DNA from: Oculina patagonica
Taxonomy: Eukaryota
DNA length: 64,000 bases
Reading direction: 5' to 3'
NCBI RefSeq assembly: GCF_052425735.1
Contig: NC_135763.1
Location: 5,208,001-5,272,000 of the forward strand
Shown: in pieces, positions 3,001-51,400 of the stretch
How positions within the stretch are numbered: the first letter of the stretch is position 1
How the letters are laid out: each line of letters begins with the position of its first letter
The notes under the pieces: generated by a model
The model's input: the letters and a program-made list of their open reading frames with translations, nothing else
Databases searched by the model: none
What the model was told of the DNA's origin: nothing
Translations under genes and position numbers: made by a program

Positions 3001-6000
3001 GTCGGTCATTTTCACCTGTGCTAAAAAAGGATGTGCTCGCTTCCTTGTAGTCTTCTTGGTACCAAAAGCAGAGATTACGGCTTGAGGCAGACGATCCCTA
3101 TACCAAAAGCTGTTTTCCAGCCATGGATAGTTCAGTGAACGGACAAAGCTGGCCGATGGATTCTTCTGTACACACCTCCAATCTATGGGAAATCCCATCG
3201 TATACAGTTTACAAACTGTGTTCTGAAGAAGGACCTTGTGTTGGTCTTTGACAGGTATACGCTTGCGAGGAAGTGTTGCCATGACTACTGGCAATTCTTG
3301 CTCTTTAAGATTGTCTTGAAGAGCAATTTGTTTAACATAGTGGGCTAAAATTGGCTGCGTACTTATCTCAATAATCTGCTTGTAACCATCGTTTAGCAGA
3401 TACTTCATGGCCGGGTAGAATTGGACTGGACAGCGAATATTTCGCCACCAATAATCGCCGTTAAATTGCTGACCCGAGAGAACTTCACCCTCGACGGTAG
3501 AATACATGGGAATTTTTGACAGTTGAGGTTTTAGCCTGATACGTCTCATGGCTGCTTGAAATGGCTTCCTGATGGGTTCCATGTGTGTGCTGTGAAATGC
3601 GCGTTTTGTTCCAAGAACGCGCCAGAAAGTATCTTTTGCGTGCATTGTTAAGTGTTGACCCAGTGCTTCGATTGATTGGGACTCACCAGACACTGTCACA
3701 CTCTTCGCATCATTAACTGCGGCGATGTCAAGTGTGGCACTTAAATTCAGGTTTAGCAGTAATGCCTTAGCCATTTCTTCAGACATGCCCAGAGCCGCCA
3801 TACCACCGTTGTTTGGGCATTCATCTTGCAGAGTAGCACGAGCAAGCACTATTTGAACAGCTTCCTTTACGGTGATGATCCCAGCAACACAGGCAGCGGC
3901 AAATTCCCCTAGACTATGACCAATGACAGCAGAAGGATGGATTTTCCAGGACATTAGCAGCTGTGCGGTCGCGTACTGGACAGCAAAAGTGGCCGGCTGG
4001 GCTAAGAAACTCTCAGAAATTCTTGAAACGTCTTCTGGCGCCATCAGCTCGTCTATGAGCGACCATGTAACACCTAGATCTTGAAGTAAATTGTTCACCG
4101 TCAAAATAGCTTCTCTAAAAACAACTTCACATTCCAGTAACTGTCTTCCCATGGCATACCACTGAGAGCCCTGACCACCAAACATGAAAACGAGTTTTTC
4201 ATTTTTGGAATTAACTTGGGCATAAGAAACCAACTTATCCCATCCTACGGAGTCATCAGCGTAGTCTGCAAGAGACTTAGATGCTTCAGCAGTGGAACCG
4301 AAGGCAAGTGCTAACCGGTGTGGGAGTTGGCTGCGGCGTTCATTCAAAGAGTAGCATAAGTTTTCCACAAAAGGCTTATCCATATCTTCTACATTTGCTT
4401 TGATCCATTCTGAGTAATGCTCTGCCATCTTCTGTAGAGCTTCTTTTGAAGGTGCTGACAAGGTGAGAACATTATTTTGGGGATCTGAGCTTTGTTCACG
4501 TAAACATTCCTTTAAAGGAATTTCGCGAAGGATGAGGTGCACATTTGATCCGCCAAAGCCAAACGAGTTTAAGGCTGCCATTCGCGGTTTTCCTTTTTCT
4601 GTTATCCATGGCTCAGTGGTTTGCTGCACAACAAATCCGTTTTCTTCCAGCTTTAGTTTGGGATTCAGCACGCGTATGTTCACAGTTGGTACAAACTTCT
4701 TGTTTTTGATCATCAGGGCGACCTTGATAAGCCCAGCAAGACCGGATGTAGATTCTGTGTGATTAAGGTTTGACTTAACAGAACCAATCCTTAACTTTTG
4801 GGTGGATTTTGTCGTTTGCCTGGTGTAGGTTTCCGCAATTGAATTAACCTCAACCACATCTCCAATTGCAGTACCAGTGCCATGCGCCTCGAAATAATCC
4901 ACATCTTCTGGGTTCACTCCTGACTGTTCTAGAACCCTTCTGGACAGTGCAGCTTGCATCTTTGCACTCGGGGCCGTTATTGGTACAGCATTTTGTCCAT
5001 CGCTGTTCATTCCACAGGCAATAATGTCGCAATATGGGTCATCTTTGTCACTCAAAGCGGCACTTGAAAGCTTTAAAACAACTGCTGCAAAGCCTTCCCC
5101 ACGTCCATAGCCATCCCCAGAAGAATCAAAGCTTTTGCAACGTCCATCAGGCGCCAGTAGTCCACCTATGCTGGATGCCATGTGTGTATAATGATCAAGA
5201 ATAATGTTAGGTGCACAAACGATGGCTATCTCACAGTCTTCATTGTGGAGATTATCACAGGCTATTTTTAGTGCAGTTAAGGATGAAGAACAGGCAGTAT
5301 CAACAACCAGGCTTGGGCCCGTGAGGTTTAAACAGAAGGAGATTCTGTTGGCGATAATAGACAATGTGGTTCCGGTCGAGTAAAAGTGGTCGATTTCGAA
5401 GTAATTTGTTGGATTTGATACAGCTGCCTGGTAATCCAGATTCATCACACCGACAAAGACACCCGTTGTGCACTTCTGAAGATCCTCAAGCCGCATTCCG
5501 GCATCTTCAATGGCTTCATACACCACTTGTAGTAGAATTCTTTGCTGAGGATCCATTCCACGAGCTTCTTGATTAGATATGCCGAAGAACCTGTTGTCAA
5601 AATGTGTTATTTCATCCAAGTAGGAACCATTCACAACACAATGGCGTCCGCTAACAAACCGCCTAGGATTATAGCGTTCAAAGAACGTTTGATGCTGTTC
5701 AGGTCTGTTCTCTGGGTACGCACTGTTCGAACTCTTTCCTTTCTCAAGCAAATCCCAAAACTGATCCTTACTGCTGGCCCTCGGAAATCTGCAGCTTATG
5801 CCAACGATAGAAACTCCAGGGCATTTAGGCTTCAGCTGTCGTATCTCACCATCTTGTACTTGCAAGGATACTTCTTTATTCCGTTCTTTGCTGACAGGCA
5901 GTGTATCTATCTCATTATGAGAGTCACACTTATGCAAGAGCTCGAGTAACAATACGAACATCGGCGGGGAAATAAGGAGAGCGTGGGTCAGACCTAGAAC

Positions 6001-8502
6001 AAGGACCAGAGGGACAAGTCTATGAAAAATGTCCGCTAGACTTGGATAAATAAAACCCAATGAAACCGATCCAGATATTGTTATTGACGCTCCAGCTACT
6101 ACAGACCATCCAACATAGCTTAGGGTCTCAATCATGCGAATTCGTATTTCTTGCTTTGCTGAAAATACGAATGAATAAGCCACCTGAATGCTGAAGTTCA
6201 GGGATAAGATAATTGTCAGAAAGAGGGAAAGAAAAGAGATGTGATTCAGATGAATTCCCCACACCTCCATTATAGCTGCTGCCTCCAATACGAGAAAAAC
6301 AAATGTTATAGCCAAGAAGATGCTAACCCCGAAACTCGAGGTTGAGCACAGAGAAAATATTAACACAACTGCTGTGGCAATTACGAAAACTGTGAAGACT
6401 GCTTCTTGTTCCAACAGAAAGAGGTCATCAAGATGGAAAAAATTCTCAGATACTGGGATGGCGTCCAGAAACGACTGATTAAGCAAGTCTTTTCTCAGTT
6501 TCTCTAGTGATCCTCTGTCTTCTCGGAATCGGTTGTGTTGTTCCATTTTCAGATGAATTCGAGATGCCAAAATTTTTACTCCGGGATTCATTTCTACAAA
6601 GCGTAAGTCTTGTCGAAACGGGAGATTGTATGGTTGATTAAGGAAACTCTCTAAACAAGGGTAGAATTCTGAGTTTGAGCAGGTCATGTTTTGATGATGT
6701 TTCCATTGTCGAAGGGCTGATATCCAACAAATTGATTTTCCATCACTATAGGAAGCATCCTGCAGTTTGGAACACATGTTTATTATTTGATTCTGTACAG
6801 TCTCCTGCGAATAGTCAATTTCCTTGGAGATAAGGATGCTTGTATCAGTTTCATTTCTAAAGAACTTTTCTTGTGCTTCACTGAATTTCTTGAAATTGCT
6901 ATTTTGGTAAAGTGACTCGGAGGTGCTCGTTCTCTCGCCACCTTGTAATGCAGATGACACGCACAAACTAATGATACAGACAAGGATGAAAAGTGAGAGA
7001 ATTTTACCACCAAGTGAGGTTATTATTCGTGTAAGGTTTTTCAGAATGTGCCGTAGAATATTGAAGGTTTCCAAGTCAGTAACTGACGATCTTCTTCTAC
7101 AGAATCGCTGACATGGAGTGTTCAATTTCTTCAACTTTCTTTCAAAATGCATGAAGACAGTGACCGTTACTACAGATGATGCAGTCGACACTATTGCATA
7201 AGTAAGAAGTGATGCTAAGAAAAAATCTGAAATAACATCAAAGGAAGATCTGACTGCAATACCAGAAAGAGTAGTTCCACATAAAGCCGACAACACAGCA
7301 ATGAGGCCTACTTTCGTGACACAACTGACGACTCGATGTTCCAGTGATGGCACCTTCTTTCGCTGTCCCCATTGTACCAGGAAAAGTATGACGTCTGAGG
7401 TAGCTTTTCCCATCAGCAAAAAGGGAATGAACAAGGTGGTTGGGAAAAGTGAAACGTTGGCCATTGAGATAATACCTGCAGAACACGTTATTGGCAACAG
7501 AATAGATGAAATCATCAATAAGACTGTTGTTAGGCAACTGAGATTATTAGAAGAAAGGTATATGACAATGAAGACAAGAACAATCATTGCCAAAGGTGAA
7601 AAATAAAGTGGCCATAGCTGTGGATTCAAGACGTTTTGTAAAGCGTCATTTGTTGCTTTTCCACTCTTGAACAAGAGTTTTGCGCACTTTAAGTGATGAC
7701 TTAAAGACAAGAGGAGACTCTCAAACGATGTTTCAAAGTTGCGAACTGCCTGATCTTTTTCTTTAGTGGTTGTCGTTTCAATGAAGTACATAAGGCGAAG
7801 AGCGTCGGCCCGAGAAGTCGGTGGATCTCTATTGTGTTGAACTTCAAAATTACTCAGCATTCGCTTAAAGGAAGAATTGAATGTTTGACCAGATGAGAGA
7901 ACAAAGGTAGGTTTGAGAAACTCGCGAACAAAAATGGAAGTTAGGTTGCTCATATTGCCAAATTGAGCACCAGCTAATTCGAGAGGACTGCTAATGATAC
8001 AGTCATGTATTGTTTTGTTTTGACTTTGTTGGGTGTTTGAAAGCAACTGCTTGGAGCATATTTCACGGTAACCAGTAATGTTCACTATGGCCTGATGGAC
8101 GGCAATGGCGTCTTTCAAACAATCTTCAGTTAGAATATTTTGACCATGTTTAGGGATCATGATGATCTGTTCTTGGCGCGCTTCAAGAAGCGGAAAGAAT
8201 TGTGCTGCATGATGCAAGTCTTGCCTGGATTGGCTGTCGGTTGCGATGAAACGTTCAACGGACGGCTGCTCGGCACGTAGGCGAACAAATCCCAGACAGC
8301 TTACAGTAACAACTATAAGCGATACCAGGAGGACAATCAATGGTTTGCGGGCAAGAAAAACCCCCAGTCTCTCGAAGGCTCTCTCGTAGAAAGCAAGAAT
8401 GCCAAAAGATAGATATCTAAGATATCTTCGTTCTCTACAGATTCTTCCGCATCCAAGTCGGCGTTTTTTACGGTTGGCGTGAATCTCATAAGACCTAGAC
8501 AT
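1..8502 (-). CDS. Copy C: Patched/NPC1-like RND domain-type I polyketide synthase fusion (3' part runs off the window)
   Basis: Exons 8502(or acceptor 8494)-2785, 2676-2520 and 2030-<1 have GT-AG boundaries and the same phases as copies A and B. Motifs: ~12 TM segments; KS DTACSSS/EAHGTGT/KSNLNH; AT GQGSQW/GHSLG/RAFHS; DH DHALIQGGVIMP and HPCILDACLQ; ER LLIHEANRGPG. The frame of exon 3 is consistent wherever it was checked. Confidence 0.9.
2785..8502 (-). CDS. Copy C giant exon: RND(SSD)-KS-AT-N-terminal DH
   Basis: 1918-aa ORF 2746-8502; donor CAG|GTTAGT at 2785/2784. Confidence 0.92.
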
Positions 8503-19093: not shown

Positions 19094-22000
19094 CTAACTG
19101 GTCAACAATGTCACTGCAAATACAGCTTCTATCATGTTGTAAAACGCTTTTAAATCGGAATAATCAGTGAATTCCAAGTTGTAGACACGTTGACCTGTGA
19201 TGACGGAAGCGACTTGTCCCAGGTTCCCACTTTGACGTGCTCCAACTCTTCGCTTGCGCCAGGCATACTTATGGGCACTGAAGACGAGTCTTCCTGGCTG
19301 CACCATGCGCAGGTCTAAAAAAAAGAACGATTCTTATAAGAGAAATTTCTTTCGATAATGAGTTACTGGTCGATAAAGCCTAAGGATTATTTGTTTAAGA
19401 ACAACAAGCACAACGACAAGTCAATGGTTGTGAAGTCGTTTTGCATGAGGCTATGTTAATCCAGCACGCTTATGACGTATCATTGCAATTTGTTGGTTTT
19501 ATTTTATGAAAAAAAACCATTCCCTTTTTGATTACATGTCCTGTTTAAAACACAAGAGAAAATTATCCGACTTTTCTCAAACTTTCACTCGTGTTATTGT
19601 CAAGTAAAAAAGGCACGCCATTTTCACAGGGCTTGAAAGGGCTTGATGAATGACAGCTGAAGAATGCTAATTATTAATGTTACCTTTTAGGTCAATTATC
19701 TTTTTGGTTTTCTCTTTCTCATTCGTTTCTGCCTCGTCGACTTTTGACCTCAGCTCAAGTTGGTAGGTATCTTCTTCGAAATAAAGTTCCCCAAAATGTG
19801 GCCACTTGTTGCCTGAAATAAAAAGAAAAAAGTTAAAAGTGTAAGAGGTAACCCAAGAACAATGATATGCTATCTGCAAGTGTTTTAAGAAGTGGCGGAT
19901 CTAGGGGAGGGGGCCCCCGCCTTATTTCCATGCTAAACTGAGGCCCAAAGGGCTGAGAATAATTATTTTCGAGAATGGGCCCCCTCTTATTCCAGGGTCT
20001 GGATAATCAGGCCCTCACTTATTTGAAGGTCTGTATCCGCCACTGTCAAGGACTGTAAGGTTACTAAAATAATTGTAGAAATCGCTCCCAGAACGATGGA
20101 AATAGAGACGATAATAACGAGCCTTAGAGAAGCAAGGCTTATATAAACATTAACCGTAAAAAGGTTCTATTGTATAAAAATTCCATGTTGTAATTAGTCC
20201 CTTCTCAATTTGCGTGGCACACAAGAACCGTCACTTGACGACTCAAACGATCGCTGCGAAGTAGACTGTATGTTGCAAAAGATTGATGAAAAAATTCAAA
20301 GAAATACTAGTTAAACTTGAAAACGCGACCCCTAGTGGTTCTAAACTCAGTCGGCGCATACTGATACCCATTTTCATCCTCGCCATCTCTAGTCTTTGTC
20401 ACTTCCTGATGGGCTCATGTTAGTTTGTCGAGTATTGTTTTACAACGTTAAACCACCATTGACCAATGTCCCTCTACAAACAATCTCAAACGATACAAAG
20501 CATTCTTGGCAGTGGAGTAAAAGCCATAAGCTAACTTGAGATTAATGGAACGCTGCCAAAATGAATTACCTTTCTTTGAGTGAAGAAACACATTTACTCC
20601 ACCGCAAAGTTTTTCCACGGCTCGTCTTTGGTTGAATGTCCTTGTTGGTCTTGGGAATTCCGGAAATAACATGCGGTAGTTGAATGCGAGGGCTGTTGCT
20701 AGGATACTTCCTGTCACGTGAGCATAAGGTAACTCGCTTAAGGAGTAGTGGTCCCCAGGACAAGCGAGCACAGTTGTGCCGCCATCCACCAACTGGCCCC
20801 AAACTTCCTCGACGCTATCTGATGAACGAAGCCTGGGCGAGAAGCGAGCGTTTTGGCTTTTCAGGAAAGTAAGAGGACCTCGATAACGAACCTAATAATG
20901 GAAGAAAAGGTTAAAAAAAACGTACGTATAATTATCTAGTGATATGCATTTTCGTTTAAAGTAGTCATGTGTAATGATTGTGCGAAGATGCTCTGAAATA
21001 CTGGGTAATGTTTGGAGTATTTTTCTTCTTTCTGTAAAATATTACGACAGGACTGGTCAAAAAGATTTCTAGGTTATAGAGTCTGTTGTATCCGGTAAGT
21101 CAAAAGTTTCAAGTCAATACAAACGACCCATACCTCAGGAGGCTGCCACTCTTGGTGTGTTCTATTAGAAACACTTTGGTTCCTTAGGAGAGCCTCTCTG
21201 AGTGCTTTTAAATTGTAGGACGCGAGTCCTTTTTCAAGGCTCCTTTTCTGTAATTCTTCTATGATCCAGTCTTGGGTGTTCCTTTTCCTCAAGTGTTTGT
21301 ATTCTTCAGCGTCCATCTTAAGGGAATCTACCGCCAGCTTTGTCAGATAGTTTTCAAATTGTAGCTAAAAAGACGAACAACAAAAGGATTAACTACTGTT
21401 GATGATTGAATTGATTGCACTTCAGCTATAGCTCTGTAAATTATGGATAAAGTATTCTGTAAATTAATTCAACAGAGATTTTCTGAATATAATGAGAGGT
21501 AACCGCTACATCATGATTAAGTCAACCACCTTTCTTACGAACCTGAACATGTCGACTTTGCGAATTTGCATCCTCCTGCATGGAAGCCAATCTAGTGCTG
21601 ACAGTCCGTGAGCGCGGATACCAAGGGAATGTGTCAATCATGGCTACAAACTCCACCCTCTGGTTCTGCTCTGTCAACAAGGAAGCCATTTCGTACGCAA
21701 GTAGCCCTCCGTATGAATATCCGCCCAGAAAGTACGGTCCATGGCGCTGTTCCTCGCTGATCAGGTGAACGTAATGTGCAGCAAGTTCACGTACACTGCC
21801 CCAGTCCTCACTCACTGCTGTTGGGTCGGTAAAGCCCAGTGCATAGAAAGATATCAAATCCTTATACCGGGAAATAAAAAGCACCAATCACACAAAAAAG
21901 CCAAAAAGAAGCACGGATGACCAAAACTGGACAAGAATAGATCAAATTGCATCGAAATAAACTTCTGCCAGGTCAACTGAAATCAAGTTTGGGCTACATT

Positions 22001-25000
22001 GTACGAAAATGTAGTGTATGATATTGAGACTGATGTTTGCTCATTGCGTAATGTAGATAGGTCTGCACCAAGGTCGAAGTGGCCCGTACCAATCGAGATA
22101 ACGCTTACCCTGGTTCCCTTAGCATGAAGAGACTAACTGTATTGCTGCTGCTACTCTCTCTCAAATGGAAGGTAGTCATTCGCAGAATACACCAACCTTC
22201 CAGGCTTCCCTAACAGTTTGAGTAAATTATCGTTGTCCGAAACAAAACACGCTGACCTTGCAAGTGAAGTTCAAAGCGTCATTGCAGCAGCTACGCTACC
22301 ATAGGCGTACGAGGCGGGGGGGCGAGGGGGGCTGCAGCCCCCCCAGTTCCAAAATTTTTCGGGCAAAATGCTTAGAATTCGGGCAACAAGCCTAAAGAAA
22401 AAAAAGCCGAAAAGTCTAGACAACATTACGTTCAAAACGAATTACATCAACAGGAAAAGTATTGGAAACATACCGAACTCTGTGGTTCAAAAGTCCAAAT
22501 TTCTCATTCATCTGCGTTCGTTTCTTCTCGCAAATTGCTATTATTATGTTCGATTTTTCTCGCAAATTTTGCGTGACTCCTCAGTTTTAATCAGTTGCAA
22601 TCAGCTTTTCCATAGCTTGAGCGTTTGCGCACGGTAGCTGTTATAAATGTGATGAAGCTAATGCTTTCGACTCAAATGTTTAGTCCTCAGGGCTAGCTTG
22701 AAACTTTCAACGAAATGTTTTAAAACCCATTCATCCCTGCATGTTTTACACGCTTTTGTTTTACTTTCAAATGGGGGAGAAACAATGTAAATTGGCTCCC
22801 AAAAATTAATATAATTTTTTCTGAAGTAGAGTGAATAAATAACAGATATCCGAAAAAGGATTCAGTGCATTCACACCTTCGGAGGCAAAGTTTGTACACA
22901 ACTATTTCAATGCATGTTTTATATCATTTTACATGCCTTTTTTTTTCGGCTTTCAACCCATGGCATTTTTTTTTTCGGGCAAAAAGTTCTCCGCCCCCCC
23001 AGGACCGATGGAGCCCGTACGCCTATGTACGCTACGTAGCTTGGATTTGATTAGCCAGTCAGTGTGTCATTGTGTTTTTTAAAGCTTCAGCCCATAATTA
23101 TAAAGAATAAAGTTAATTAGGATTATCGTGGAAAGCCTGACCTAGACCCATTTCCCTTTAAAGCGCAAAGAGCGATCAACAGCAATTTTCTCAATACATT
23201 TTAACGAGAAAAGGCAGGAGAAATGAGAAATTGATCAGCCACGCGATGTAAAACAAATTCTCTATACTATCACCATGAAAAAAGAGACCAATAAGGAGAT
23301 TTTGTATGCTGGTTATGCAAGGGACTCAAACAAATTTTCATTTTAACGGTTTGGCATTTACCTGGCCTTGAAATCCCGTAGAAATCGGCACCAAATTCAA
23401 CGCATAGCGGTGTGACGGATGAACACAGAAGAATTTGATAGCCGAGCCCGCAGGAGTGTACAGCGGTACAACTTGTACCTGAAGCCCGGATGTGGTGGCT
23501 GGCGAAGATGCATCTTCCACTGGTTGTGTCTCTGCAAGCCCACCTTGGTTTTCGGTATTCTGAATTTGTTCACTGGATGCTTGCCCGCTAAGCTTGGCTG
23601 TGATATCTCTTCCTAGTTTTAGTGGGGTGGTATCAGGCTGCATGAAGTAGAACACCTGAAACAAGAAGACAGTTTGTTACAAGTTTTATCTTTAATATGC
23701 ATAAAATCTAAATAAGCTTCAGCCGTGCAGCTCATAACGTAACTGCCGAAAAATGCCGTACAAAGTGATTATTGCTAATGTTATCTAAAAAAATGAAAAA
23801 AAGGAGAAGAGTCCAAAAAAATAACATGGCACCCGGACTTATGAAGCTATAGGCAGTACAGTAATAAAGGAGTCACTCAATAAATGCTTTTGGATGTACT
23901 CGCTGGTATTTAAACCCTCAATACTAACATGCTTTAGACAACTCGCATATTGCTACAAAAACCAAAGAGTTTCCAAGGAACTTTTTTTCTTGCTGTATTG
24001 AACCAAATAAAGCTTACTTAATTTGCTTAACAAATGTGAATTTTATGTCTTTGCCAACTGCTTTTTTTTTTTAACCTTTTTTGTTCCAAGATCGAAAATA
24101 GATAAAGATAAACCCACCTCAAAAGAGACCTGCAAATTGGCTTCAAGCTGCATTTTCAAGGTCAGGGCCGCGGTTGAGTCGATACCGTAGCTGTACAAGC
24201 TTTTGTTTAGATCTGTCTCAGAACGCGAAGACATTGCTGTCCATTCTCTTACTGACAAGCTAACGTATTCCATGACAAGCTCGCTTTTCTTTTCAAGATC
24301 CTTCTCCAGCATAATTCTCTGCACCAGAGACTCGGTTGACGTAGTCGTGGTCTCAGAAGTATTGATTTCAGCAGTGATGAGGGAGAGTCGAGACGTCTTT
24401 CTCAGCCCGGTGTTGCTTTTTATGAATCGAGGCCAGTCCACACCACACAGACCGATTTGGAAGCGGCTCGGCTCTTCAGTGAGAACTTTGGCCATATGTT
24501 CGACTCCTGTGAAACAAATTGGCCTTAATAATGGTATTATGATATACGATTGACAACAATCAAAAGCTCGCCTAGTGTGATCTTTATATTTCATTTTCAT
24601 TTAATTATTTAACATTCTATGTGCATCAGCAAAGAAACAGCTCACCATCTTTGGCATGGATAAAGCCCAATCCCGCTATGGTCAGCAATTTAGCTACAGC
24701 ACTTTCTCGTTCCATCACGCCAGCTCCACTGATTGGGCCCCAGTTGATGGAAAGTCCAGGGAGACCGAGAACGTTACGGCGGTACTGGGCAAGAGAATCT
24801 TGAAAAGCATTGCAGCCTGAATATGACGATTGTCCCATGTTACCAAGGATTGAGGCCATGGATGAAAACATCACAAAAAAATCCAGATCCATTTCCAAGC
24901 TCATTTGATGCAGTAAGAAGGAACCTAACAAGGACAAAATGATTTGCTTTAGCGCCCAGGTCACTTATTTTATTCTAGGAGCTTAAGAGACGATGCTTAT

Positions 25001-28000
25001 TGGGAATTTGTCGCTTACTTCCTTACATGTTACACTTGTTGGGCATATCGTAGTAGAACTTTCCATTTCGGGTTTTGAGCGGCGATTACGAAACTTGAAA
25101 ACGAACCACTTGTACCAGGAAACGTTAATAACGCAAGAGCGGGGAGTGTAGCCATGCACGGGGTAGTTTGAATATTCACCTATTGGGAATAGAGGGCTTA
25201 GTATTACGACCAGATTCCTAATACCACTTCAATTCAAAAAGGAACGCCCATGAGAAGAATAACGTAAAATGTTTGATTGTGGTACTATTGTCGATTATAT
25301 AGATAAAAGTAGGCAAAGTATCATGTCTTACCTTTGATCTTAGGACCCATGACATCAGTGAAGCTCTTAAAAGTCCAGTCTTTGACGAACTCATCTCTTA
25401 AAATCATGGCGGAGTGCACAATACCAGCCACGCTTGGAAGGGATTGTAGCTGGTCTTTAAAGGACGACATCTGTTCTTGGTTGGAAATGTCAATCTATGA
25501 GGGACAAAAATATGAAACTCTTTTTAATTTATGTCAGTGTGCCTCAAATGTTGTGCATATGTCATGTACAAATTAATGTTTATCAGTGTTTTCTAACCAC
25601 TCCATTCATGACTTCACAAAGTCGCCTTTTCTGTCTTACTTCAAGTCATTCAAGCCTTGTACCTAATAAAGTGTTTAAGCTGTAGGAATGCCATACCTGG
25701 AACGTGTGAAACTTTGCGCCGGTCCTTTCCTCTATCTCCCTTATTTCTTGAAATTTGGCAACTGAGGGTTTGGAACGACTAATAAGTCCTATGGACTTTG
25801 CTCCATTCTCTGCCATCCAGCGGGCTACTTCAAATCCAAATCCTCGAGCGCCACCTGCTACCAAGTAAGTTCTGTTTTCTTTCAACCCACACTCATCTAA
25901 ACCACAGGGAAGAACAGGAATCCTGTCAAGATCACTCTCTTCTTTAGGTGATGGAAAGGAGTGAATTAGAAAAGAAATGCCCGATGATGCTTTCACTTGA
26001 TGCTTTGGGGATGTCTGTTTGTCAATGGACGCATTTGCAGCCTGGATTGACGTTGCCAAGTCTACAGAGACCAGCTGCATTCCTTGAAGCTTTTTCAGTA
26101 CTGCCTTTTCTTCCAACAATGCCAGACTTTCCAAACAGAGCTTCTCAAAAACCAGAGGAGAACGAAGAATGTCTGTTATGTCCTCTCTCTCATATCTGAC
26201 ATGTGTTTTTGCGGGGAAAACAACGTCACCATCAAACTCGGAACTCAAGATGATAACTCGACCTCCTCTTTTAAGACACCGACTACTTTTTTGAAGAACA
26301 TTTGGAGACGGTGGGTAGAAATATACAACGGCATCAAAACTGTGCATGGAATTGTTATTGAGACCAGAGGAACTCTGACGTACTACACTTTCCGCACCCA
26401 ATTCAAGGAGAAGAGTTTTTGCAGACGTTTCGCAAGTGTCGGAAATGGTGCAAAACACTCTGTGACCCAAGGTTTTTGCAAGGACAACTGCTGCTGGCCC
26501 AGGGCCACGATTCGCATCATGTATCAGCAACTTGTGATTCTCTTCTCCAGATGCTACTCTTTGAAGTGCATGAGAAGCAATGGCTAGGCACGCAGGGATG
26601 TATGCCGCTTGTTCCTTTGTCAAGCTGGTTGGTTTTACAAACACGTTACTGACTTGAATGGGAAGAGAGGCGGAAACCTGTCCAGAGGCGATGACACCAC
26701 ACACTTCATCTCCAATTTGTAACCGAGTATTCTCGCTTTCTTCTGGTAGATCAGTCACCTTTCCAACGACGAAGACACATCTGTTTGGTTTGGCTACATC
26801 AATTAGCGATTCAGAGGGTGTCCAGCAATGCAACAGATCTATTGTGAGCTCAGAGTGGGAAGGCTTTGAAAGAGTCTTCTCGCGCAGGCAGAGAGTTCGT
26901 GACGATGAGATAACTGATAAGTAGAAGGAACGCCTTTTCTTGATTTCAACGTTGTTGGTTTTTGGTTGCTCAGGGGAAATTTGTGATCTCACAATGCGAT
27001 TTATGAAACGTTTGCCATCTCTAAAGGCCACTTCTTCTTCAATGCTGTCACTCAGAACCTCCTCAATCAAGGAATCTACTTCGTGCATATCCCTTTTGTT
27101 GTTTAGGTCAACAGTTGCAACCCTGAAATTGAATTCTTCGAGGTTTGCTGTTCGTCGAAGACCCCAGACTGTAGAACTCCACGGGATGGTACTAGTCTTA
27201 AGAGACTTGTCACAAGCGTTCAACAACTGTGTACGTTCGGTAATGAGAAACAGTCGTGCATCGAACCACCCCTTCTGTATCACAAGCTTGAGTAAGAAGA
27301 CAGAACTGCTGAACGCGAGGCGTTGAGCTTGTTCAATGACATCGAAATTGTCCGGGAGAAGGGTCGTTTCCACAGGCCACATGTTGATGACTCTGAGGTT
27401 GGATGAATGGTTTGGTGGTATGTCCGAAAATGCCGCGTTGATTGCTTCCTCTGCTTTGGTGTTGAAACATCCAGCATTTGGTGGGTCAACTGTGATGACA
27501 TTAACCTTAGCCGCCTGAAGCCTTGTGACTAGGGCGTTTGAGAAATCAGTGGAGTCTCTCAACACCAGGCAAGTCAAATTTGGTGCGGTTTCCCTCTGCT
27601 CTTGTAACTCATCTTCCATCCACAGGACTTCATAGGCAAGGCCATCAAAGACAAATCGACGCGGCGTGCTGGTCAACTCTGCGATGCGAAACTCACTCAT
27701 GGTGAGTAAAACTTTTCCAGATGGACTCAGGAGGGTAACATCAAATATTCCAAACTCAGTCGCATCCGCATTGACGTGGCAATACAGCTGGTTGGTAGAG
27801 GGAACGCCACTCAGTGTTATGGTCTTGAAACCCACTGGCACAACGGACATATCCTCAGTTACTGCGTTTCCAAGGGGAACAAAGCAGGATTGAAGGCAGG
27901 TGTCTAAAATGGAAGGATGAATCACATAATCACCAGCTTCGTTTTGAATGGACGGTGATCCACTTATGTCAACTAAGCAAACTCCCTCATTGTCGCGCTG

Positions 28001-31000
28001 CCAAATTTGTTTGATGATCCAGAAATTAGGTCCATAGTTGAACCCATACTTCTCCGTTATTTCTTTGAACCGTTCCATCGGCATTGGCGTCATGTTTGTG
28101 ATGAGTTCGTTTACAGCTGGCCCAGGTTCATTGGAAGCTGTGAATACAAACACAAAGAAAATCTTAGGTTTAAAGTTCCAAATAACTAGTTCATTGTTTC
28201 TAAAAAGCTTTGAAATGATTTGTCAAATTGTGTTGAAAATATTTCAAAAAGGATAATACTGCAAATTATTAATAAACAAAGGCAAAAAAATAGAACAACA
28301 GCATTGAACACAAAACTTCCAATTAAGGTAATAGTACCTCCGTCCTTTAAGTTGTCTTGTTTATGTAATAGATCGACAGAGATTTTCCCGCTACTCAGGT
28401 TAATTTCTGACTGGTCATCCTGTACACTTGTAATATGGAACTCAGCCTTGTCAATTGTGTCGGTCTTCAGAAGTCGCAGTCGTAGTGACCGAACCTGAAG
28501 TGTAAAGGATAAAACAATGATATAACTTCAGCTAATGTTAGTACGCTATAATTATCCTATTGAAATTGCAAGTAATTTTATTAGACTCTGACCTGTGTTT
28601 CAGGCAGTGTTAGAAGACTTGAAAGCTTCACATCACTCAGTTCCAAGCCGGCGATGTCTACGAACTTGTCCCTAACCATTGCAAAGGCCATCTCCAGGTA
28701 AGCAGATCCTGGCATCACAGTACCCCCCTGAATAAGAGCGTGGTCTTTCAGAGTTGAAAAGTGGTGAAGGTCAATCTCAGTTTCCCAGCAATGCAGGCCT
28801 GAATACAGGTCGGTCATTTTCACTTGTCCTAGAAATGGGTGCGTTTGCTTTGTGGTTTTCTCAGCACCAAGAGGAGAAATTATTGTTTCGGGTGGACGTT
28901 CACGATACCAGAAGCTGTTTTCCTGCCATGGATAGTTTGGCGAACGAACAAACCAAGCTGATGGATTCCTTTGCACACACGTCCAATCTATGGGAAATCC
29001 AATTGTGTACAGTTTACATACTGTGTTCTGAAGAAAGCACTTGTGCTGGTCTTTTACAGGTACTCTTTTGCGAGGAAGAGTTGCTACGACAACAGGCATT
29101 TCTTGGTCTTTAAGGCTGTCTTGAAGAGCAATCTGTTTCAGGTAGTGGGCTAGAATGGGCTGGGTACTTATCTCAATAATCTGCTTGTAACCATCTTTTA
29201 ACAGATTCTTCACAGCTGGATAGAACTGGACTGGACAACGGATATTTCGCCACCAGTAATCGCCGTTAAACTGCTGACCAGGGAAAACGTCGCCCTCGAC
29301 TGTTGAATACATAGGAATTTTCGACAGCTGAGGGTTTACCTTGATACGTTTCATAGCTGCTTGAAAAGGCTTCTTGATGGGTTCCATGTGTGTGCTGTGA
29401 AATGCGCGTTTTGTTCCAAGAACGCGCCAGAAAGTATCTTTTGCATGCATTGTTAAGTGTTGACCCAGGGCCTCGATTGATTTGGACTCACCAGACACAG
29501 TCACGCTCTTCGTATCATTAACTGCGGCGATGTCAAGAGTGGCACTTAACTTCAGGTTTAGCAGTAAAGCCCTGGCCTTTTCTTCAGACATGCCCAGAGC
29601 TGCCATACCTCCATTATTGGGGCATTTATCTTGCAGAGTGGAGCGAGCTAGCACCAACTGAACAGCTTCCTTGACCGTAATTATCCCAGCAACACAGGCA
29701 GCTGCAAACTCCCCTAGACTGTGACCGATGACAGCGGAAGGAAAGATTTTCCAGGACATCAGCAGCTGAGCAGTCGCGTACTGGACAGCAAAAGTCGCGG
29801 GCTGAGCGAAGAAATTCTCAGAAATTCTTGAAACGTCTTCTGGCGCCATCAACTCGTCTATCAGCGACCACGTCATACCCAGATCTTTAAGTAAGCTGTT
29901 CACCGTCAAAATCGCTTCTCTGAAAACAGCCTCACATTCAATTAACTGTCTTCCCATGGCATACCATTGAGAGCCCTGACCACCAAACATGAAAACGAGT
30001 TTTCCATCATTGGAAGTCACTTGGGCATAAGAAACCAACTTATCCCATCCCACGGAGTCATCAGCGTAGTCCGCCAAAGACTTGGATGCTTCCGCAGTGG
30101 ATCCAAAGGCAAGTGCCAATCGGTGTGGGAGTTGGCTGCGGCGTTCGTTCAAAGAGTAGCACAAGTTTTCCACAAACGGCTCATCCATATCTTCGACGTT
30201 AACTCTCATCCATTTGGAGTATAGTCCTGCCATTTTCTGTAGAGCCTCCTTTGAACGCGCGGACAGGGTGAAAACATTATTTAGACGTTCAACTTTTCCT
30301 TCTTGAAAACTTTGTTTCGACGGTACTTCGCGAAGGATGAGGTGTACATTTGTCCCACCATAACCAAAGGAGTTCAAGGCTGCTATTCGCGGTTTTCCTT
30401 TCGCTTTAATCCAGGGCTCACTGGTTTGTTGCACAACAAGCTGTTTCTCTTCCAGTTTTAGTTTGGGATTCAGCACACGTATGTTCACAGTTGGTACATA
30501 TTTTTTCCTTTTGATCATCAGAGCGACCTTGATTAGCCCAGCAAGGCCAGAAGTGGATTCAGTGTGATTGATGTTTGACTTAACAGAACCAATCCTTAAC
30601 TTTTGTGTGGTTTGTCTGGTGTATGTATCGGCTATCGATGTGACCTCTACGACATCTCCAATTGCGGTACCAGTGCCGTGCGCTTCAAAGTAATCCACCT
30701 CTTCTGGATTCACTCCTGACTGCTCAAGAACTTTTTTGGATAATTCAGCTTGCATCTTTGCACTCGGAGCCGTCATTGGTACAGCATTTTGTCCATCGCT
30801 GTTCATTCCACAAGCCACTATCTCGCAGTATGGGTCATCTTTGTCACTTATAGCTGCAGTTGATTGCTTCAAAATAACTGCTGCAAAACCTTCCCCACGT
30901 CCATAACCATCTCCAGAAGAGTCAAAACTTTTGCAACGTCCATCAGGCGCCAGAAGTCCAGCTATGCTGGATAACATTTGCATAGCCGGATTAAGGACAA

Positions 31001-34000
31001 TGTTAGGTGCGCAAACGATGGCTATTTCGCAATCCTCATTGTGCAGGTTATCACAAGCTATTTTGAGGGCAGTTAACGATGAAGAGCATGCTGTATCAAC
31101 GGCCAGGCTTGGACCAGTAAGGTTAAGACAGAAGGACACTCTGTTGGCGAGAATCGACATTGAGCCTCCTGTTGAGGAAAACTGGTCGATATTGTGGTAA
31201 TTGGATTTGTCTGTTACAAGTGCTCCATAATCCAAATTCATTACGCCGACAAAGACTCCTGTTCTACACTTCTGAAGATCTTCAAGTCGCATTCCAGCAT
31301 CTTCAATGGCCTCATACACCACATGTAGCAGAATTCGTTGCTGTGGATCCATTCCCTGAGCTTCTTGATTGGAAATGCTAAAAAACTTGTTGTCAAAATG
31401 TGTTATTTCTTCCAAGTAAGATCCATTCACAGCAGATAGACGTCCACTGACAAAGCGTCTGGGATTATACAGTTCAAAGAAAGTTTTATGCTGTTCAGGT
31501 CTACTGTTGGGGAAGGGACCATTTGAACTCTTCCCTTGCTCAAGAAAGTACCAAAACTGGTCCTTACCGCTGGCTCCTGGAAATCTGCAGCTGATGCCAA
31601 CGATGGAAATTCCAGGGCGTTTTGATCTGAGCTGCAGGGTGACCTCATCTCGTACTTGTAACGATACTTCGTCGTTGTGTTCCTTGTGGGTATGTACTAC
31701 ATCTACGTCATTCTGAGATTCAAAACTATGCACGAACTCGAGAAACAATACCATTATTGGCGGGAAAACAACTAGAGCGTGGGTCAACCCTAGAACAAGC
31801 ACCAGAGGAACAAGCCGATGGAAAATGTCTGCTAGACTTGGATAAATAAACCCAAGTGAAACAGACCCACATATTGTGATTGACGCTGCAGTCACCACAC
31901 ACCAGCCAACAGAGCGTAGGGCCTCGATCATGCGAATTCGTATCTTAAGCTTTGCTGAAAAGACGAATGAATGGGCGACCTGAATGCTGAAATTCAGCGA
32001 TAAGATAATCGTCAGAAAGACAGAGAGAAAGGAGATATGATTCAGGTGAATTCCCCACACCTCCATTATAGCTGCTGCCTCCAATACGAGAAAATCAAAT
32101 GTTATGGCCAGGTAGATGCTTATCCCGAAACTTGTGTTCGAGAACAGAGAGACCATAAACACTACTGCTGTAGCAGTTATGAAAACTGTGAAGACTGCTT
32201 CTCTTTCCAACAGGTAAAGGTCATCAAGATCAAAAAAGTTCTCAGAGACTGGTACGACTTCCATGGGAGACTGTTTGAGTAGGTCCCTTTTCAGTTTCTC
32301 CAGCGATCCTCTGTCTTCTCGAAATCGGTTATGTAGTTCCATATTCAGATGAATTCGAGATGCTAGAATTCTGGCACGGGTATTCGTATCTTCAAAACGT
32401 ACGTCTTGTCGAAAGGGGACGTTTTGGGATTCATTCAGGAAACGTTCTAAACACGGGTAGAACTCAGAGTTCTTGCAGCTCATGTTGTGATCCAACGTCC
32501 ACTGGCGTAACGCTGTCATCCAGCAGAATGATTCCCCCTCACTGTAGGAAGCCTCTTGCAGTTTTGTACAAATGTTTATTATTTGATTTTGTACAGTCTC
32601 CTGTGAATAGTCAATTTTCCCCGAAAAAACGATGCTTGTATCTGTTTCTTTGCCAAAGAACTTCTGCTGTGCTTCACTGAATTGCTTGAAATTGTCATTT
32701 TGGTTTAGTGCCTCGGTGGTGCTCGTTCGCTCATCACGTTGTAAAGCAGACAACACACACAAACTGACGATGCATGCAAGGATAAGTACTGCAAGAATTT
32801 TTCCACCAAGTGACGTTATTATCCAGGTAAGGCTTTTCAGAATGTGTCGCAGTTTAGATTTGCGGCATTGCACGAGTCCTTGTTCGAAGCTCCCAACGTT
32901 AGTAATGGACGATCTTCTTCTACAAGATCTTGGACAAGGATTGTTCAATTTCTTCAACCTTCTTTCAAAATACATCAACAGTATTACTGTTACTATAAAA
33001 GACACAGCCGAAGCTAATACATAAACTATAAGTGTCGCCATGAAAAAATCTGAAATCACATCAAAGGAAGATTTGATAGCAATTCCAGACAGAATTGTTC
33101 CACATAATGCCGACAACACAGCAAGGAATCCTGCTTTCGCCACACAACTGCTGACTCGATGTTCAAGTGATGGCACCTTCTTTTGCTGCCCCCATTGTAC
33201 CAGGAAAAGTACAACGTCTGACGTTGATTTTCCTAACAACAAGAAGGGAATGAACAAGGTAGTTGGGAAAAGGGAAGTGTTGGCCATTGAGATAATACCC
33301 GCAGAACACGTCATTGGAAACAGAATAGATGAAATCATCAATAAGACTGTTGTTAGGCAACTGAGATTATCAGAGGAGAGGTATACGACAATGAAGACAA
33401 GAACAATCATTGCCAAAGGTGACAAATAAAGTGGCCATAGCTCTGGTTTCAATACGTTTTCTAAAGCATCATTTGTGGTTTTTCCAGTCGTGAAGGAGAG
33501 ATTTGTACAGTTCAAACGATGACCAATCGACAAGAGGAGACTTTCAAGAGATGCTTCAAAGTTAAGAACTGCCTGGTCTTCTTCTTCAGTGGTTGTCCTT
33601 TTAATGAAGTAAACAACTCGAAGCGCGTCGGCTCGAGCAGTAGGTGGATCCGTCTTATGTTGAACTTGAAAATTGCTCAGCATTTGAATAAAGGAAGAAT
33701 TGAATGTTTGACCAGAGGAGAGAACGATAGTAGGGTTTGTCAACTCGTGAGCCAGAATGGAGGAAAGGTTGCTCAAATTTTCAAATTGAGTACCAGCTAA
33801 TTCGAGAGGACTGCTGATGATACAGTCATGTTTGGAAAGTTTTTGTTGGGTTTCTGGAAGCAATTTCCTAGAACATATTTCACTGTAACCAGTTATGTTC
33901 ACTACGGTCTGGTGCACGAGAATGGCGTCTTTCAAACAATCTTCACTTAGGATATTTTCACCATGTTTTGGGATCATGATGATCTGCTCTTGGCGCGCTT

Positions 34001-34358
34001 CAAGAAGTGGGAAGAATTGTGCTGCATGATGCAAGTCTTTCCTGGATTGGCTGTCAGTCGCGGTGAAACGTTCAACGGACGGATGCTCTATACGCAGGCG
34101 AATTAATCCCAGACAACTCACAATGACAACTAAAAGCGACACCAGAAGGACAACCCACGGTTTGCGAGCAAGAAAGAACCCCAGTTTCTCGAACGCTTTC
34201 TGGTAAGCAGTGAGGATGCCATACGATACGGTTCTTCGTCCTCTAGTGATGGCTCCACATCCTAGCCGACTTCGTTTACGAGTTGTGTGAATTTCGTAAG
34301 ACCTAGACGCGAGAATGTAATTTTGTAAAGTCATTGGAATATTTAATTGGAAAGTCAT
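19094..34358 (-). CDS. Copy B: Patched/NPC1-like RND-polyketide synthase (KS-AT-DH-psiKR-ER0-KR-ACP-TE)-PH-like fusion, ~3569 aa if started at ATG 34358
   Basis: 12 GT-AG exons that join in frame: 34358(acceptor 34302)-28593, 28494-28338, 28137-25697, 25494-25332, 24924-24646, 24506-24118, 23655-23362, 21860-21543, 21364-21134, 20891-20570, 19812-19684, 19314-19094(TAG). KR GGARGFG, LRD, GQSSYSGCN; ACP YGIDS; TE GYSYG..IDT..GDH. Confidence 0.92.
19891..20045. mobile_element. hAT-like MITE
   Basis: Inverted ends AGTGGCGGAT / ATCCGCCACTG. Confidence 0.65.
22070..22270 (-). mobile_element. Degenerate SINE body
   Basis: AAGTGGCCC..GCTTACCCTGGTTCCCTTAGCATGAAGAGACTA..GTATTGCT resembles, from recollection only, an abundant cnidarian tRNA-SINE core. 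Confidence 0.4.
22300..23027. mobile_element. Non-autonomous hAT DNA transposon in intron 7 of copy B
   Basis: TIR CATAGGCGTACG / CGTACGCCTATG; perfect 8-bp TSD TACGCTAC (22292-22299, 23028-23035). Confidence 0.9.
25697..28137 (-). CDS. Copy B exon 3: C-terminal DH, psiKR, degenerate ER, start of KR
   Basis: 835-aa ORF; HPSILDTCLQ, WGLRRTANLEE, LLIHDANRGPG, TYLVAGGARGFG. Confidence 0.9.
28593..34358 (-). CDS. Copy B giant exon: RND(SSD)-KS-AT-N-terminal DH
   Basis: 1925-aa ORF; donor CAG|GTCAGA. Confidence 0.92.
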
Positions 34359-48400: not shown

Positions 48401-51400
48401 AACCCTATTAAGTGACCACTTACCATTTCTCCGAAGGTGGCCGCTTTATAGGGGTAATCGACTGTAATAGTTCCTGTTACCTAATTTAACACGACCAATT
48501 TATCATTGCGGTTTCTAGTGTGATAGTAGAGAGATTAAGCATGACTTTAAACGGCAAACGCGAGCTTGCTTTTTATCAAATTCTTAAATGAATCCCTAAT
48601 AAAAAGGGAAAAAATTCCACATTCACGACAAACCCAAAACTACTCATTTCCACGTACGAACATCAAACGTCAGAAGTTGACATTTTGCCGCTCGCGGGAA
48701 AAATAAACGTCATGCTTAATTTCTCTAGTGTCCCATTTAATGATTATCGTTTCCAACATTTTTAACAGCCTGTTTGAGACTATTGCGATATTCAGTCTAT
48801 TAACATAATGTGTCTGAAAAAGTAAAAAAAAAAAAAATAGTGTACCATCCTTGGCATCTATGAAGCCTAGTCCTGCTATGGTCATCAATTTAGCGACCCC
48901 AGGTTCACGCTCCATTAAGCCAGCTCCACTGATTGCTCCCCAGTTTATCGCCAGCCCGGGTAGACCAAGTACCTGTCTTCGGTACTGGGCAAGAGAATCT
49001 TGAAAAGCATTGCAAGCTGAGTATGACGACTGTCCCATGTTACCAAAGACCGAAGCCATGGATGAAAACATCACAAAGAAGTCCAGATCCATTTCCAGGC
49101 TCATTTGGTGCAGTAAAAAGGAACCTAGCAATAAATCGAAACTTATTACCGTAATGATTCGATTTAACTCGTGCTGCATGTGCACTGCGAACAGAGACGG
49201 AAACTTTACTGACGTCGGGACGCCGTTTATCAAAATGGCGGCAATTATCGTCAAATTCGATACTCGTTGGCCATATCACCGTGGAAGGCTTCTCCTTGTT
49301 TTTAAGAGCACAATCTAGGAAATTGGAAAAGGACTTTTTTCCAAAGTAGTTTTTACGTAAGAGAGTTGAGGTACTCCTAGCCACACACGTTTTTATTAGT
49401 TGAGATCTAACTGAAATAGAAAGGGGACACGTATTGGAAGGAGGATACTAAATCGAATGACTGCGGGTTTTAGATAACAAAGATATAACAAAGCATAATA
49501 ATCCTTGTAGTTTACCTTTTATCTTAGGAGCCATGCTATCAGCGAAGCACTCAAATGTCAACTCGTAGAGAAATTCATCCTTAAGAACCATGGCAGTGTT
49601 CACGATGCCAGCAAGACTTGGAAGAGATTGAAGCTGTTCTTTCAAGGCCAACATGTGTTCTTGGTTGGATATATCAATCTGAAAGAAACAGAAATACGAA
49701 GCACTGATTTAAAATTTGTCTCCTTGTGTTAGCGGTTTTTTTTATGTCCAACACTAGATTTAATTTTAAGTCACTTTGCCAGTGACTGTACTAACAGCTT
49801 GCTCTTTCTTACTCTGATTTTTCTTGCCTTTTGCGCGGAAAACTTTATGTCATAAAGCTTTGTACCTAATAAAGCGTTTTAGTGATGAGGATGGCATAGT
49901 ATTACCTGGAACATATGGATCTTTGCGCCAGTCCTTCTTTCTATCTCTCGTACTTCTTGGAATTTGGCATCTGAGGGCTTTGAACGGCCAATTAGACCTA
50001 TGGACTTGGCTCCATTCTCTACCATCCAACAAGCCACTTCAAATCCATATCCTCGAATCCCCCCTGCAACCAAGTACGTTCTGTTTTCTTTTAGGCCACA
50101 TTCGTCTAAGCCACATGGAAGTACAGGAATCTTGTGAAGATCACTGTCTTCTTCAGATGATGGATACGAGTGAATAAGGTAAGAAATGCTCGAGGATGCT
50201 TTCATTTGATGTTTTGGCGATGATTGCTTGTCAAGGGATGCGTTTGCAATTTCGATTGCTGTTGCCAAGTCCATAGATACCAGCTGCATTCCTAAAAGCT
50301 TCTCGAGGGCTCCTTTGCTTTCCAAAAATTCCAGACTCGCCAAACTGAGGTTCTCGTATGCTTGAGGAGACCTGAGAATGCCTGCCATGTCTTCTCTCTC
50401 ATATCTGACACTTGTAGTTGCAGTGAATACGACGTCACCAGCAAACTCAGAACTCAAGATAATAACTCGTCCTCCTGCTTTCAGACTCTGCTCACTTTTT
50501 TTAAGGGCATTTGGAGAAGGTGGGTAGAAAAATAAGACGGCGTCAAAACTGTGTCTAGAATCATCATCGAGACCAGCCAAACTCTGACGGACTACACTAT
50601 CGGCACCCAACTCAAAAAGAAGAGTTTTTGTAGACGTTTGGCAAGTGTCTGGAATGGTGCAAAACACTTTGTGCCCCATGGCTTTTGCAAGGACGACTGC
50701 TGCTGGTCCAGGTCCACGGTTGGCTTCATGTATCAGTAATTTCTGATTCTTGACTCCTGATGCTTGTTTTTGGAGAGCATGAGAAGCTATGGCTAAGCAC
50801 GCAGGAATGTATGCCGCTTGTTCTTTTGTCAGACTGGTTGGTTTTGCAAACACGTTATTAAGCTGGATATAGAGGGAAGGGGAAACCCGCCCAGAGGCGA
50901 TGACACCACACACCTCATCTCCAATGCGCAACTGAGTATTCTTGCTCTTCCCTGGTAGATCAGTCACCTTACCAACGACGAAGACACATCCTTTTGGTTT
51001 GGAAACATCAATTAGCGATTCAGAAGGTGTCCAGCAATAATGGAGATCCATTGTGAGCTCAGAGTGTAATGGCTTTGAAAGACTTTTCTCGCGCAGACAA
51101 AGCGTTCTTGACGAAGGGATACGTGATAAGTACAACGCACCCATCTTCTTGCTTTCAATTCTCTTGGTTGTGGCTTCCTCGGGGGAAACTTTTGACCTCA
51201 CAACGCGATTTATAAAACGTTTGCCATCTCGAAAGGCCACCTCTTCTTCAGTACTGTCGCCCAGAATCTCGTCAATCAAGGAATCTGCCTCATGCATATT
51301 GGTTTTGTTGCTAAGGTCAACAGCTATCATCCTGATGTCAAATTCTTCAAGGCGTGCTGTTCGTCGAAGACCCCAGACTGTAGAACCCCATGGAATGGAA

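Follow-up and report, generated by a model that had tools for sequence, protein, structure and literature searches.

A degenerate, putatively inactive enoylreductase domain is conserved in a tandem family of coral polyketide synthases

How much can the state of a single domain tell us about the product of an iterative polyketide synthase (PKS)? The question is raised by a locus of the stony coral Oculina patagonica, where three tandem PKS genes, termed C, B and A, lie on the minus strand of a stretch of 64,000 nucleotides (assembly GCF_052425735.1, contig NC_135763.1, positions 5,208,001 to 5,272,000; hereafter the window). Each gene has a first exon of ~1,900 codons and then an open frame of ~830 codons, and the latter encodes a domain with the position of an enoylreductase (ER) and an altered nucleotide-binding loop. 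Judged by its sequence, this domain very probably neither binds NADPH nor has ER activity, a state termed ER0. For the locus as a whole, the best explanation, which we hold to be probable, is that a dead ER has been retained for its structural role in a partially reducing iterative PKS with an unsaturated product; that this product is of the conjugated polyene type is a tentative reading by analogy, with a chance slightly below even.

The canonical ER motif LIHxxxGGVG is replaced in all three window copies by LLIH(D/E)ANRGPGP, as read from the minus-strand translation, in which positions 26300-26749 give ...ENHKLLIHDANRGPGPAAVVLAKTLGHRVFCT... and copy B reads LLIHDANRGPGPAAVVLAKTLGHRVFCT. An earlier note on this DNA had reported this replacement, as LLIH(D/E)ANRGPG in B, A and C, and its positions were right to within 5 bases. 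The exact positions of the loops, and the extent of the domain in copy B, are as follows.

26495..26530, minus strand: degenerate ER glycine loop of copy B, LLIHDANRGPGP, residues 2511-2522 of the spliced model, opposite LIHxxxGGVGQ of MAS, CurK and FAS
50704..50739, minus strand: ER loop of copy A, LLIHEANRGPGP
391..426, minus strand: ER loop of copy C, LLIHEANRGPGP
25934..26971, minus strand: whole ER-like (ER0) domain of copy B, 346 amino acids (about residues 2365-2710 of the spliced model), identified by AF2, Foldseek and Pfam and by Ser in the column of the conserved Lys

HMMER alignments to solved ERs place the loop opposite LIHSATGGVGQAA in MAS, LIHAAAGGVGQAA in CurK and LIHSGSGGVGQAA in human fatty acid synthase (FAS). 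Within the GxGxxG fingerprint, Arg stands at the central Gly and Pro at the Val that follows, and a second Pro comes directly after the last Gly. The Ala with which the fingerprint begins is not unusual, being found in MAS and CurK as well. When the best 150 representatives from a search over 1.8 billion proteins were scanned for ER loops, the outgroup PKS loops (~120 among the matches listed) all read xGG[VT]G. In an alignment of 77 sequences, termed A2, all 13 canonical ERs have Gly in the central column, where 55 of the 64 family members have Arg. A second position tells the same groups apart: the Lys of the (E/L)(I/L)GK motif, which is the proposed proton donor of canonical ERs, is present in 12 of the 13 canonical sequences and in none of the 64 family members, where the column is always Ser, Ala or Asn, mostly Ser, as in copy B. 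We take this column to be equivalent to Lys1771 of mammalian FAS. Read in structural terms, the Arg takes the place of a Gly that must pack against the NADPH pyrophosphate, with two prolines flanking the last Gly (xGGVG to NRGPG), and Ser or Ala stands for the Lys used in proton transfer by canonical PKS and FAS ERs.

Profile searches agree with the residue-level comparison. The coral ER-like domain reaches 20.2 bits with the Pfam profile ADH_zinc_N, for which the cut-off is 31.8, and has no match to ADH_N. Its HMMER alignments to solved ERs leave out the first part and start near residue 70-86; the earlier note was thus right to call the N-terminal part highly diverged at the sequence level. 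An unrelated megasynthase of this genome, taken as a control, retains ILIHSASGGVG, EIGKRD and HIGK and reaches 67.4 bits for ADH_zinc_N and 42.2 bits for ADH_N. This control (G000:C2:3964500-3973500, L013) comprises an acyltransferase (AT), a dehydratase (DH), a methyltransferase-like segment, a canonical ER and a ketoreductase (KR), in one open frame of more than 1,800 codons, and could represent the coral FAS or some other PKS.

Despite its diverged N-terminal sequence, the ER-like domain is predicted to keep the complete two-lobed fold of the medium-chain dehydrogenases/reductases (MDRs), with a GroES-like and a Rossmann lobe. The AF2 model, made from the family alignment, has a pLDDT of 82.3 and a pTM of 0.85, and the beta-loop-helix of the former nucleotide site (residues 151-170) is modelled at pLDDT 92-95. 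The top Foldseek matches are the ERs of CurK, CurF and JamJ, the mitochondrial enoyl-thioester reductase MECR and MAS, at TM ~0.7 (~0.70-0.73 for CurK, JamJ, MECR and MAS), and LovC is among the matches as well. Measured against an active PKS or FAS ER, the domain has the two-lobed MDR fold in its predicted model, reads ANRGPG where the glycine loop (G/A)xGGxG would follow LIH, lacks the conserved Lys and falls below the Pfam gathering scores of both ADH_zinc_N and ADH_N.

Selection on the domain was estimated as omega (nonsynonymous over synonymous change) by the Nei-Gojobori method, using six copies from a genomic cluster, described below, for the domains of the ER0 exon, and copies A, B and C for the ketosynthase (KS), AT, N-terminal part of the DH and membrane region. 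Among the six copies, omega is 0.29 for the ER-like domain, 0.30 for the structural pseudo-ketoreductase (psiKR), 0.20 for the C-terminal half of the DH and 0.16 for the N-terminal part of the KR; among A, B and C it is 0.14-0.21 for the KS, 0.12-0.15 for the AT, 0.09-0.15 for the N-terminal part of the DH and 0.26-0.38 for the membrane region. The ER-like domain is thus under purifying selection at the level of the psiKR and at about twice the omega of the catalytic domains. The altered loop itself is maintained, as its codons indicate: seven codons of ANRGPGPAAVV differ among the six copies, by synonymous changes only. A pseudogene or decaying remnant is ruled out, given that the exon of ~810 codons is open in six of six cluster copies with an omega of 0.22-0.28, and that gene B is spliced and transcribed.

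The same constancy also speaks for a different explanation, namely that the ER-like domain is alive. Its ANRGPGP loop would then bind NAD(P)H, or some other ligand, in a mode of its own, and the domain would have retained or acquired a role in catalysis or regulation. No amino acid of the loop changes among paralogues whose synonymous divergence (dS) reaches 0.78, and ~100 homologues conserve it; a canonical Asp is kept, and the model is confident at the loop. These points are met by the replacement, with Arg, of a Gly that is invariant in all canonical ERs sampled, by the loss of the canonical Lys in 64 of 64 family members, by distant members in which even the remaining glycines are missing, and by an omega equal to that of the non-catalytic psiKR. 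We consider a living domain very improbable, and an ER0 under selection for its structure remains the preferred reading.

The ER0 state extends well beyond the window. The window sequence is also present in runs labelled coral metagenome. The genome (529 Mb) holds eight copies of the ER0 exon: six intact in a cluster on contig C6, one frameshifted, and one distant paralogue on C3. The cluster (G000:C6:5033576-5316086, L001-L006) spreads at least six intact paralogues, A, B and C included, over ~285 kb, with one on the opposite strand. A dS of 0.26-0.78 between the six copies makes this an old array, not a recent one. A scan for ANRGPG matched six of the eight genomic copies; in cluster copy F, according to the codon alignment, the loop is ILIHEANRGPGP. 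The frameshifted copy (G000:C6:25364987-25367452, L007 and L009-L011) lies far from the cluster and is split over three frames, its loop still reading LLIHDANRGPGP; it is probably a pseudogene or the result of assembly errors. The C3 paralogue (G000:C3:7544800-7547190, L008) is 32% identical in the ER0 exon, and its loop has degenerated further, to DDTNSGLG; in other assemblies it corresponds to a second group of homologues (P0006 and a group at ~54% identity).

A search with the ER region found ~120 homologous exons in other coral assemblies, at 56-83% identity. None of the ~130 family members examined has GGVG; ~100 read [EQD]AN[RH]GPGP and 18 read QAQLSPGP. The species identified for individual members are Desmophyllum pertusum, Stylophora pistillata (orthologue LOC111328543) and O. 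patagonica, and many members have N-terminal Pfam matches to Sterol-sensing or Patched. One relative, 22% identical in the ER exon, has the same exon of Patched/sterol-sensing domain (SSD), KS, AT and DH, followed by an exon without any Pfam ER; this common layout, with no Pfam ER in so distant a relative, points to a dead ER that is ancestral to the fused family. The window copies look alike, then, because they inherited their state by common descent. The earlier note had described the motif as broken identically in all copies, which is accurate in that A, B and C have the same loop, but the agreement adds no evidence from independent events. Convergent breakage in three copies is ruled out, the state being common to every paralogue and homologue sampled. 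The ER0 state would have arisen before the family diversified and then been held by purifying selection.

Transcription and splicing of gene B are evident from contigs of four runs, drawn from two studies, in which five stretches with GT-AG ends on the minus strand are missing. With cut offsets applied, these are the introns 28495-28592, 28138-28337, 25495-25696, 24925-25331 and 24507-24645. The four runs are RNA by presumption only; the removal of five introns in each would otherwise be hard to explain. A contig covering 25697-27169, motif included, shows zero differences, and the spliced frame of gene B is open for 3,066 codons as far as the acyl carrier protein (ACP), with the ER loop starting at residue 2511. 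The exon of 157 bases at 28338-28494 is visible through the spliced contigs only.

The exons and open frames of the three genes, from the membrane region to the thioesterase (TE), are as follows.

28593..34358, minus strand: first large exon of copy B, with the N-terminal membrane (SSD/Patched-like) region, KS, AT and the N-terminal part of the DH with its catalytic His (from Pfam, active-site motifs, the splice joint and alignment of the DH His to PpsC)
28581-34358, minus strand: wider limits of the same first exon of copy B
28338..28494, minus strand: small exon of copy B, middle of the DH, 52 codons (157 bases); joints 28492/28591 and 28137/28338 in four runs, with the frame staying open
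25697..28137, minus strand: exon of copy B with the C-terminal half of the DH, psiKR, ER0 and the N-terminal part of the KR; GT-AG joints in RNA-type contigs of four runs
25332..25494, minus strand: KR exon of copy B with the LRD motif and catalytic Lys (PKIKG)
24646..24924, minus strand: KR exon of copy B with catalytic Ser, Tyr and Asn (SS...SSYSGCN)
24115..24506, minus strand: ACP exon of copy B, with the GIDS phosphopantetheine site (Pfam PP-binding)
21525..21887, minus strand: open frame of copy B with the thioesterase core (GYSYGG; Pfam Thioesterase, 62 bits); the limits are those of the open frame, not exon ends
49879..52383, minus strand: open frame of copy A with the exon for the C-terminal half of the DH, psiKR, ER0 and N-terminal part of the KR; ER0 at ~50140-51177
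52804..58506, minus strand: first large exon of copy A, with membrane region, KS, AT and N-terminal part of the DH
1..2100 (upper end approximate), minus strand: exon of copy C with the C-terminal half of the DH, psiKR and ER0, truncated by the window start; ER0 at ~1-867, open frame starting near 2030
2746..8502, minus strand: first large exon of copy C, with membrane region, KS, AT and N-terminal part of the DH

The full counterpart of the truncated copy C exon is open in the genome, at locus L005. Run over the exons of gene B, Pfam finds, in order, a weak sterol-sensing match, the KS, AT and N-terminal part of the DH, then the C-terminal part of the DH, a sub-threshold ADH_zinc_N and the start of the KR, with the ACP and TE in later open frames. 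The KS has its Cys and His (DTACSS, EAHGTGT), with NH where GH is usual, and the AT has GHSLGE and RAFHS. The DH has a His that aligns with the catalytic His of the PpsC DH, together with GFNYGPNF and LDTCLQ; the KR has an AGGARGFG loop, LRD, the Lys in PKIKG and the Ser, Tyr and Asn of SS...SSYSGCN; the GIDS and GYSYGG motifs of ACP and TE are present. KR and DH thus appear as intact as the earlier note had claimed, and the KR is of B-type, to judge by its LRD motif. That note had also placed no methyltransferase between DH and psiKR, and indeed none gives a Pfam signal, the DH-psiKR-ER stretch being colinear with MAS, itself without a methyltransferase, with no space left for one. Two small peculiarities are common to A, B and C: the second His motif of the KS reads KSNLNHTES, with Asn for the usual GH (residues 1260-1275 of the spliced B model), and the His motif of the DH has an insertion of one residue, HALIQGGxxMP (HxxxxGGxxxP; residues 1873-1883).

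The intact motifs of KS, AT, KR, DH, ACP and TE, in a gene that is transcribed and spliced, make a partially reducing iterative PKS the most likely reading. Two features agree with an ER0 in such an enzyme: a domain of ER fold stands between psiKR and KR, colinear with DH-psiKR-ER of MAS and with the KR beginning in the same exon, and its cofactor and catalytic residues have been lost under purifying selection. In modifying regions of the MAS and FAS type, the body of the ER provides scaffolding and a dimer contact, which would explain why the domain is retained in the DH-psiKR-ER-KR region of the coral enzymes. With KR and DH active, beta-carbon processing would end at the trans-enoyl thioester, and the TE would then release an unsaturated acyl chain, possibly a conjugated polyene. 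The earlier note had gone from a dead ER to an unmethylated conjugated polyene acid; the inactive ER is well supported, and the acid is a reasonable guess from precedent. The polyene is less certain than the ER0 because KR and DH may be skipped, an ER acting in trans is conceivable and chain length is not predictable. For malonate as the only building block we see even chances; an unmethylated product, for which the missing methyltransferase and the malonyl-like AT motif are the grounds, is weaker still than the polyene. To our knowledge, a product has not been assigned to any cnidarian type I PKS. Inference from a dead domain to a product class has an animal precedent in the inactive KR of SpPks1 and CrPKS, which goes with aromatic products (PMC11414698).

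Several points weigh against this reading. The Asp kept by the family is that of the canonical Y..D motif (YEREDI in A2), and the strong conservation of the loop also fits a new ligand or function instead of a purely structural role. The ER0 assignment for the coral family draws on sequence and a predicted model. An ER0 by itself does not fix the product, and the fungal LovB uses a separate ER. Iterative PKSs can skip KR or DH in some cycles; EcPKS2, also an ER0 enzyme, skips its KR in one cycle and keeps a ketone, and whether an animal PKS uses malonyl or methylmalonyl units is reportedly not predictable from AT motif rules (PMC11831141).

Skipping is the basis of a second explanation, in which the ER in cis is dead and KR and DH are used in some cycles only, yielding a mixed keto, hydroxy, ene or pyrone polyketide. 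We regard it as possible but unlikely. Regioselective KR skipping in EcPKS2 is its precedent (PMC11831141), and the fused SSD/Patched region suggests that a lipid product is handled. One possible variant has an amphiphilic lipid passed on by the fused membrane domain, for example in the nucleation of calcium carbonate. Hojo et al. 2015 tie animal PKSs without a Pfam-detectable ER (medaka OlPKS and sea urchin PKS-2) to biomineralization, and list coral genes described as 'other-KS-AT-DH-KR-ACP-TE' as candidates (PMC4604110). Against the mixed product, the sequence gives no sign of skipping: no catalytic residue is missing from KR or DH, and within the modifying region these two domains are under the strongest constraint. 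The coral link to biomineralization is the suggestion of a single paper.

A third explanation has a trans-acting ER supply the missing reduction, as LovC does for LovB, so that the product would be saturated or partly unsaturated. Many MDR-type reductase exons exist elsewhere in the genome, LovC-type enzymes have the same fold, and LovB with LovC is itself a precedent. A search of the whole genome with PF00107, however, found no MDR gene inside the PKS cluster (5.0-5.35 Mb) except the ER0 domains, although in animals a lack of clustering says little. Such partners are not known for animal PKSs, and the animal ER0 enzymes characterized so far, EcPKS1 and EcPKS2, yield polyenes alone. We judge a trans-acting partner improbable.

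ER0 domains are well known and ordinary in iterative PKSs, EcPKS1/2 and LovB being examples, and the coral family is a further case. LovB, a fungal highly reducing iterative PKS whose own ER does not bind NADPH, relies on the trans-ER LovC and has an active methyltransferase; it resembles the coral enzymes in its ER0 and differs in its methyltransferase and in its partner, none being evident in the coral cluster. The ER0 of EcPKS1/2 (PDB 9CQ1, 9CQ9, 9CTL) is ordered, in a canonical conformation and without active-site residues; it contributes the ER0:ER0' interface of the dimer, and both enzymes make polyenes (PMC11831141). These are, as proposed for the coral enzymes, animal iterative type I synthases with an unused ER of canonical fold in a dimeric modifying region. 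They differ in being FAS-like users of methylmalonyl-CoA that have a pseudo-methyltransferase but neither a TE nor a membrane domain, whereas the coral PKSs are MAS/Pps-like, with no methyltransferase-like domain, with a TE and with an N-terminal Patched/SSD-like membrane region of ~900 amino acids. EcPKS1 is a weak sequence match to the coral ER region: the modifying region scores 82 bits with MAS, 45 with FAS and 26 with EcPKS1, and the DH matches PpsC and MAS. Membership of the animal FAS-like PKSs (AFPKs) is ruled out on best-hit evidence, the solved relatives being MAS, PpsC and the curacin and jamaicamide ERs, and by the lack of a methyltransferase-like domain.

The best solved relative is MAS with the MAS-like PKS (PDB 9D2Y, 5BP4), iterative and with a colinear DH-psiKR-ER-KR region that lacks a methyltransferase. 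The coral enzymes have the domain order (KS-AT-DH-psiKR-ER-KR-ACP) and catalytic motifs of a MAS-like iterative PKS, with a Patched/SSD-like region added at the N-terminus and a TE at the C-terminus. MAS differs in having an active ER (LIHSATGGVGQ) and making saturated branched acids, against NRGPG and no catalytic Lys in the coral domain. Nearer to hand are three genes of the coral Acropora digitifera, two on one scaffold, that Hojo et al. 2015 describe as 'other-KS-AT-DH-KR-ACP-TE' in suggesting a link between PKSs and carbonate biomineralization (PMC4604110). They match by domain string, with an N-terminal 'other' part, a TE, tandem copies and no Pfam ER call, and from this description very probably belong to the same family, their ER-like domain having been overlooked; the genes were catalogued, and the ER-like domain or its state went unremarked (PMC4604110). 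In the literature on coral PKS annotation and calcification cell types we found only this paper, and no publication on the product or ER state of the coral family. The parrot psittacofulvin enzyme MuPKS is an animal type I PKS that makes unmethylated conjugated polyenes (PMC11739604, PMC10764717); its chemistry is that proposed in the earlier note, it has no membrane fusion, and the likeness is by analogy only. Red coral, an octocoral, is reported to contain all-trans polyenes with 9-12 double bonds (PMC4821862), which makes the polyene idea attractive, although nothing ties them to this scleractinian family.

A dead ER would narrow the prediction for the whole family, which is transcribed, arranged in tandem arrays and widespread among stony corals, to an unsaturated chain. 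The published coral PKS domain string is corrected by the ER-like domain that had been missed. The family also bears on the origin of unmethylated polyenes in marine biominerals and on the role of PKS products in carbonate nucleation. A bolder proposal, to which we give a small chance, is a coral-specific machine in which a conjugated, unbranched polyene lipid would be handed to the enzyme's own fused Patched/SSD membrane domain for export. If true, this would be the first genetic source of the unmethylated polyenes that Raman spectroscopy detects in the biominerals of cnidarians and molluscs, or else of a polyketide on which the coral skeleton nucleates. The strictly conserved ANRGPGP loop would then have been shaped to plug what was once the NADPH pocket, beyond mere decay.

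The fusion to a Patched/SSD region is an unusual aspect of these coral PKS genes. The N-terminal ~900 codons of each first exon (31660-34358, 55800-58506 and 5800-8502, minus strand) form a multi-pass membrane region, which in the window copies gives a weak Pfam Sterol-sensing match and in coral homologues matches Patched (PF02460) too. This covalent fusion of an RND-like protein and a PKS recalls the non-covalent coupling of the transporter MmpL7 to the synthase PpsE in mycobacteria.

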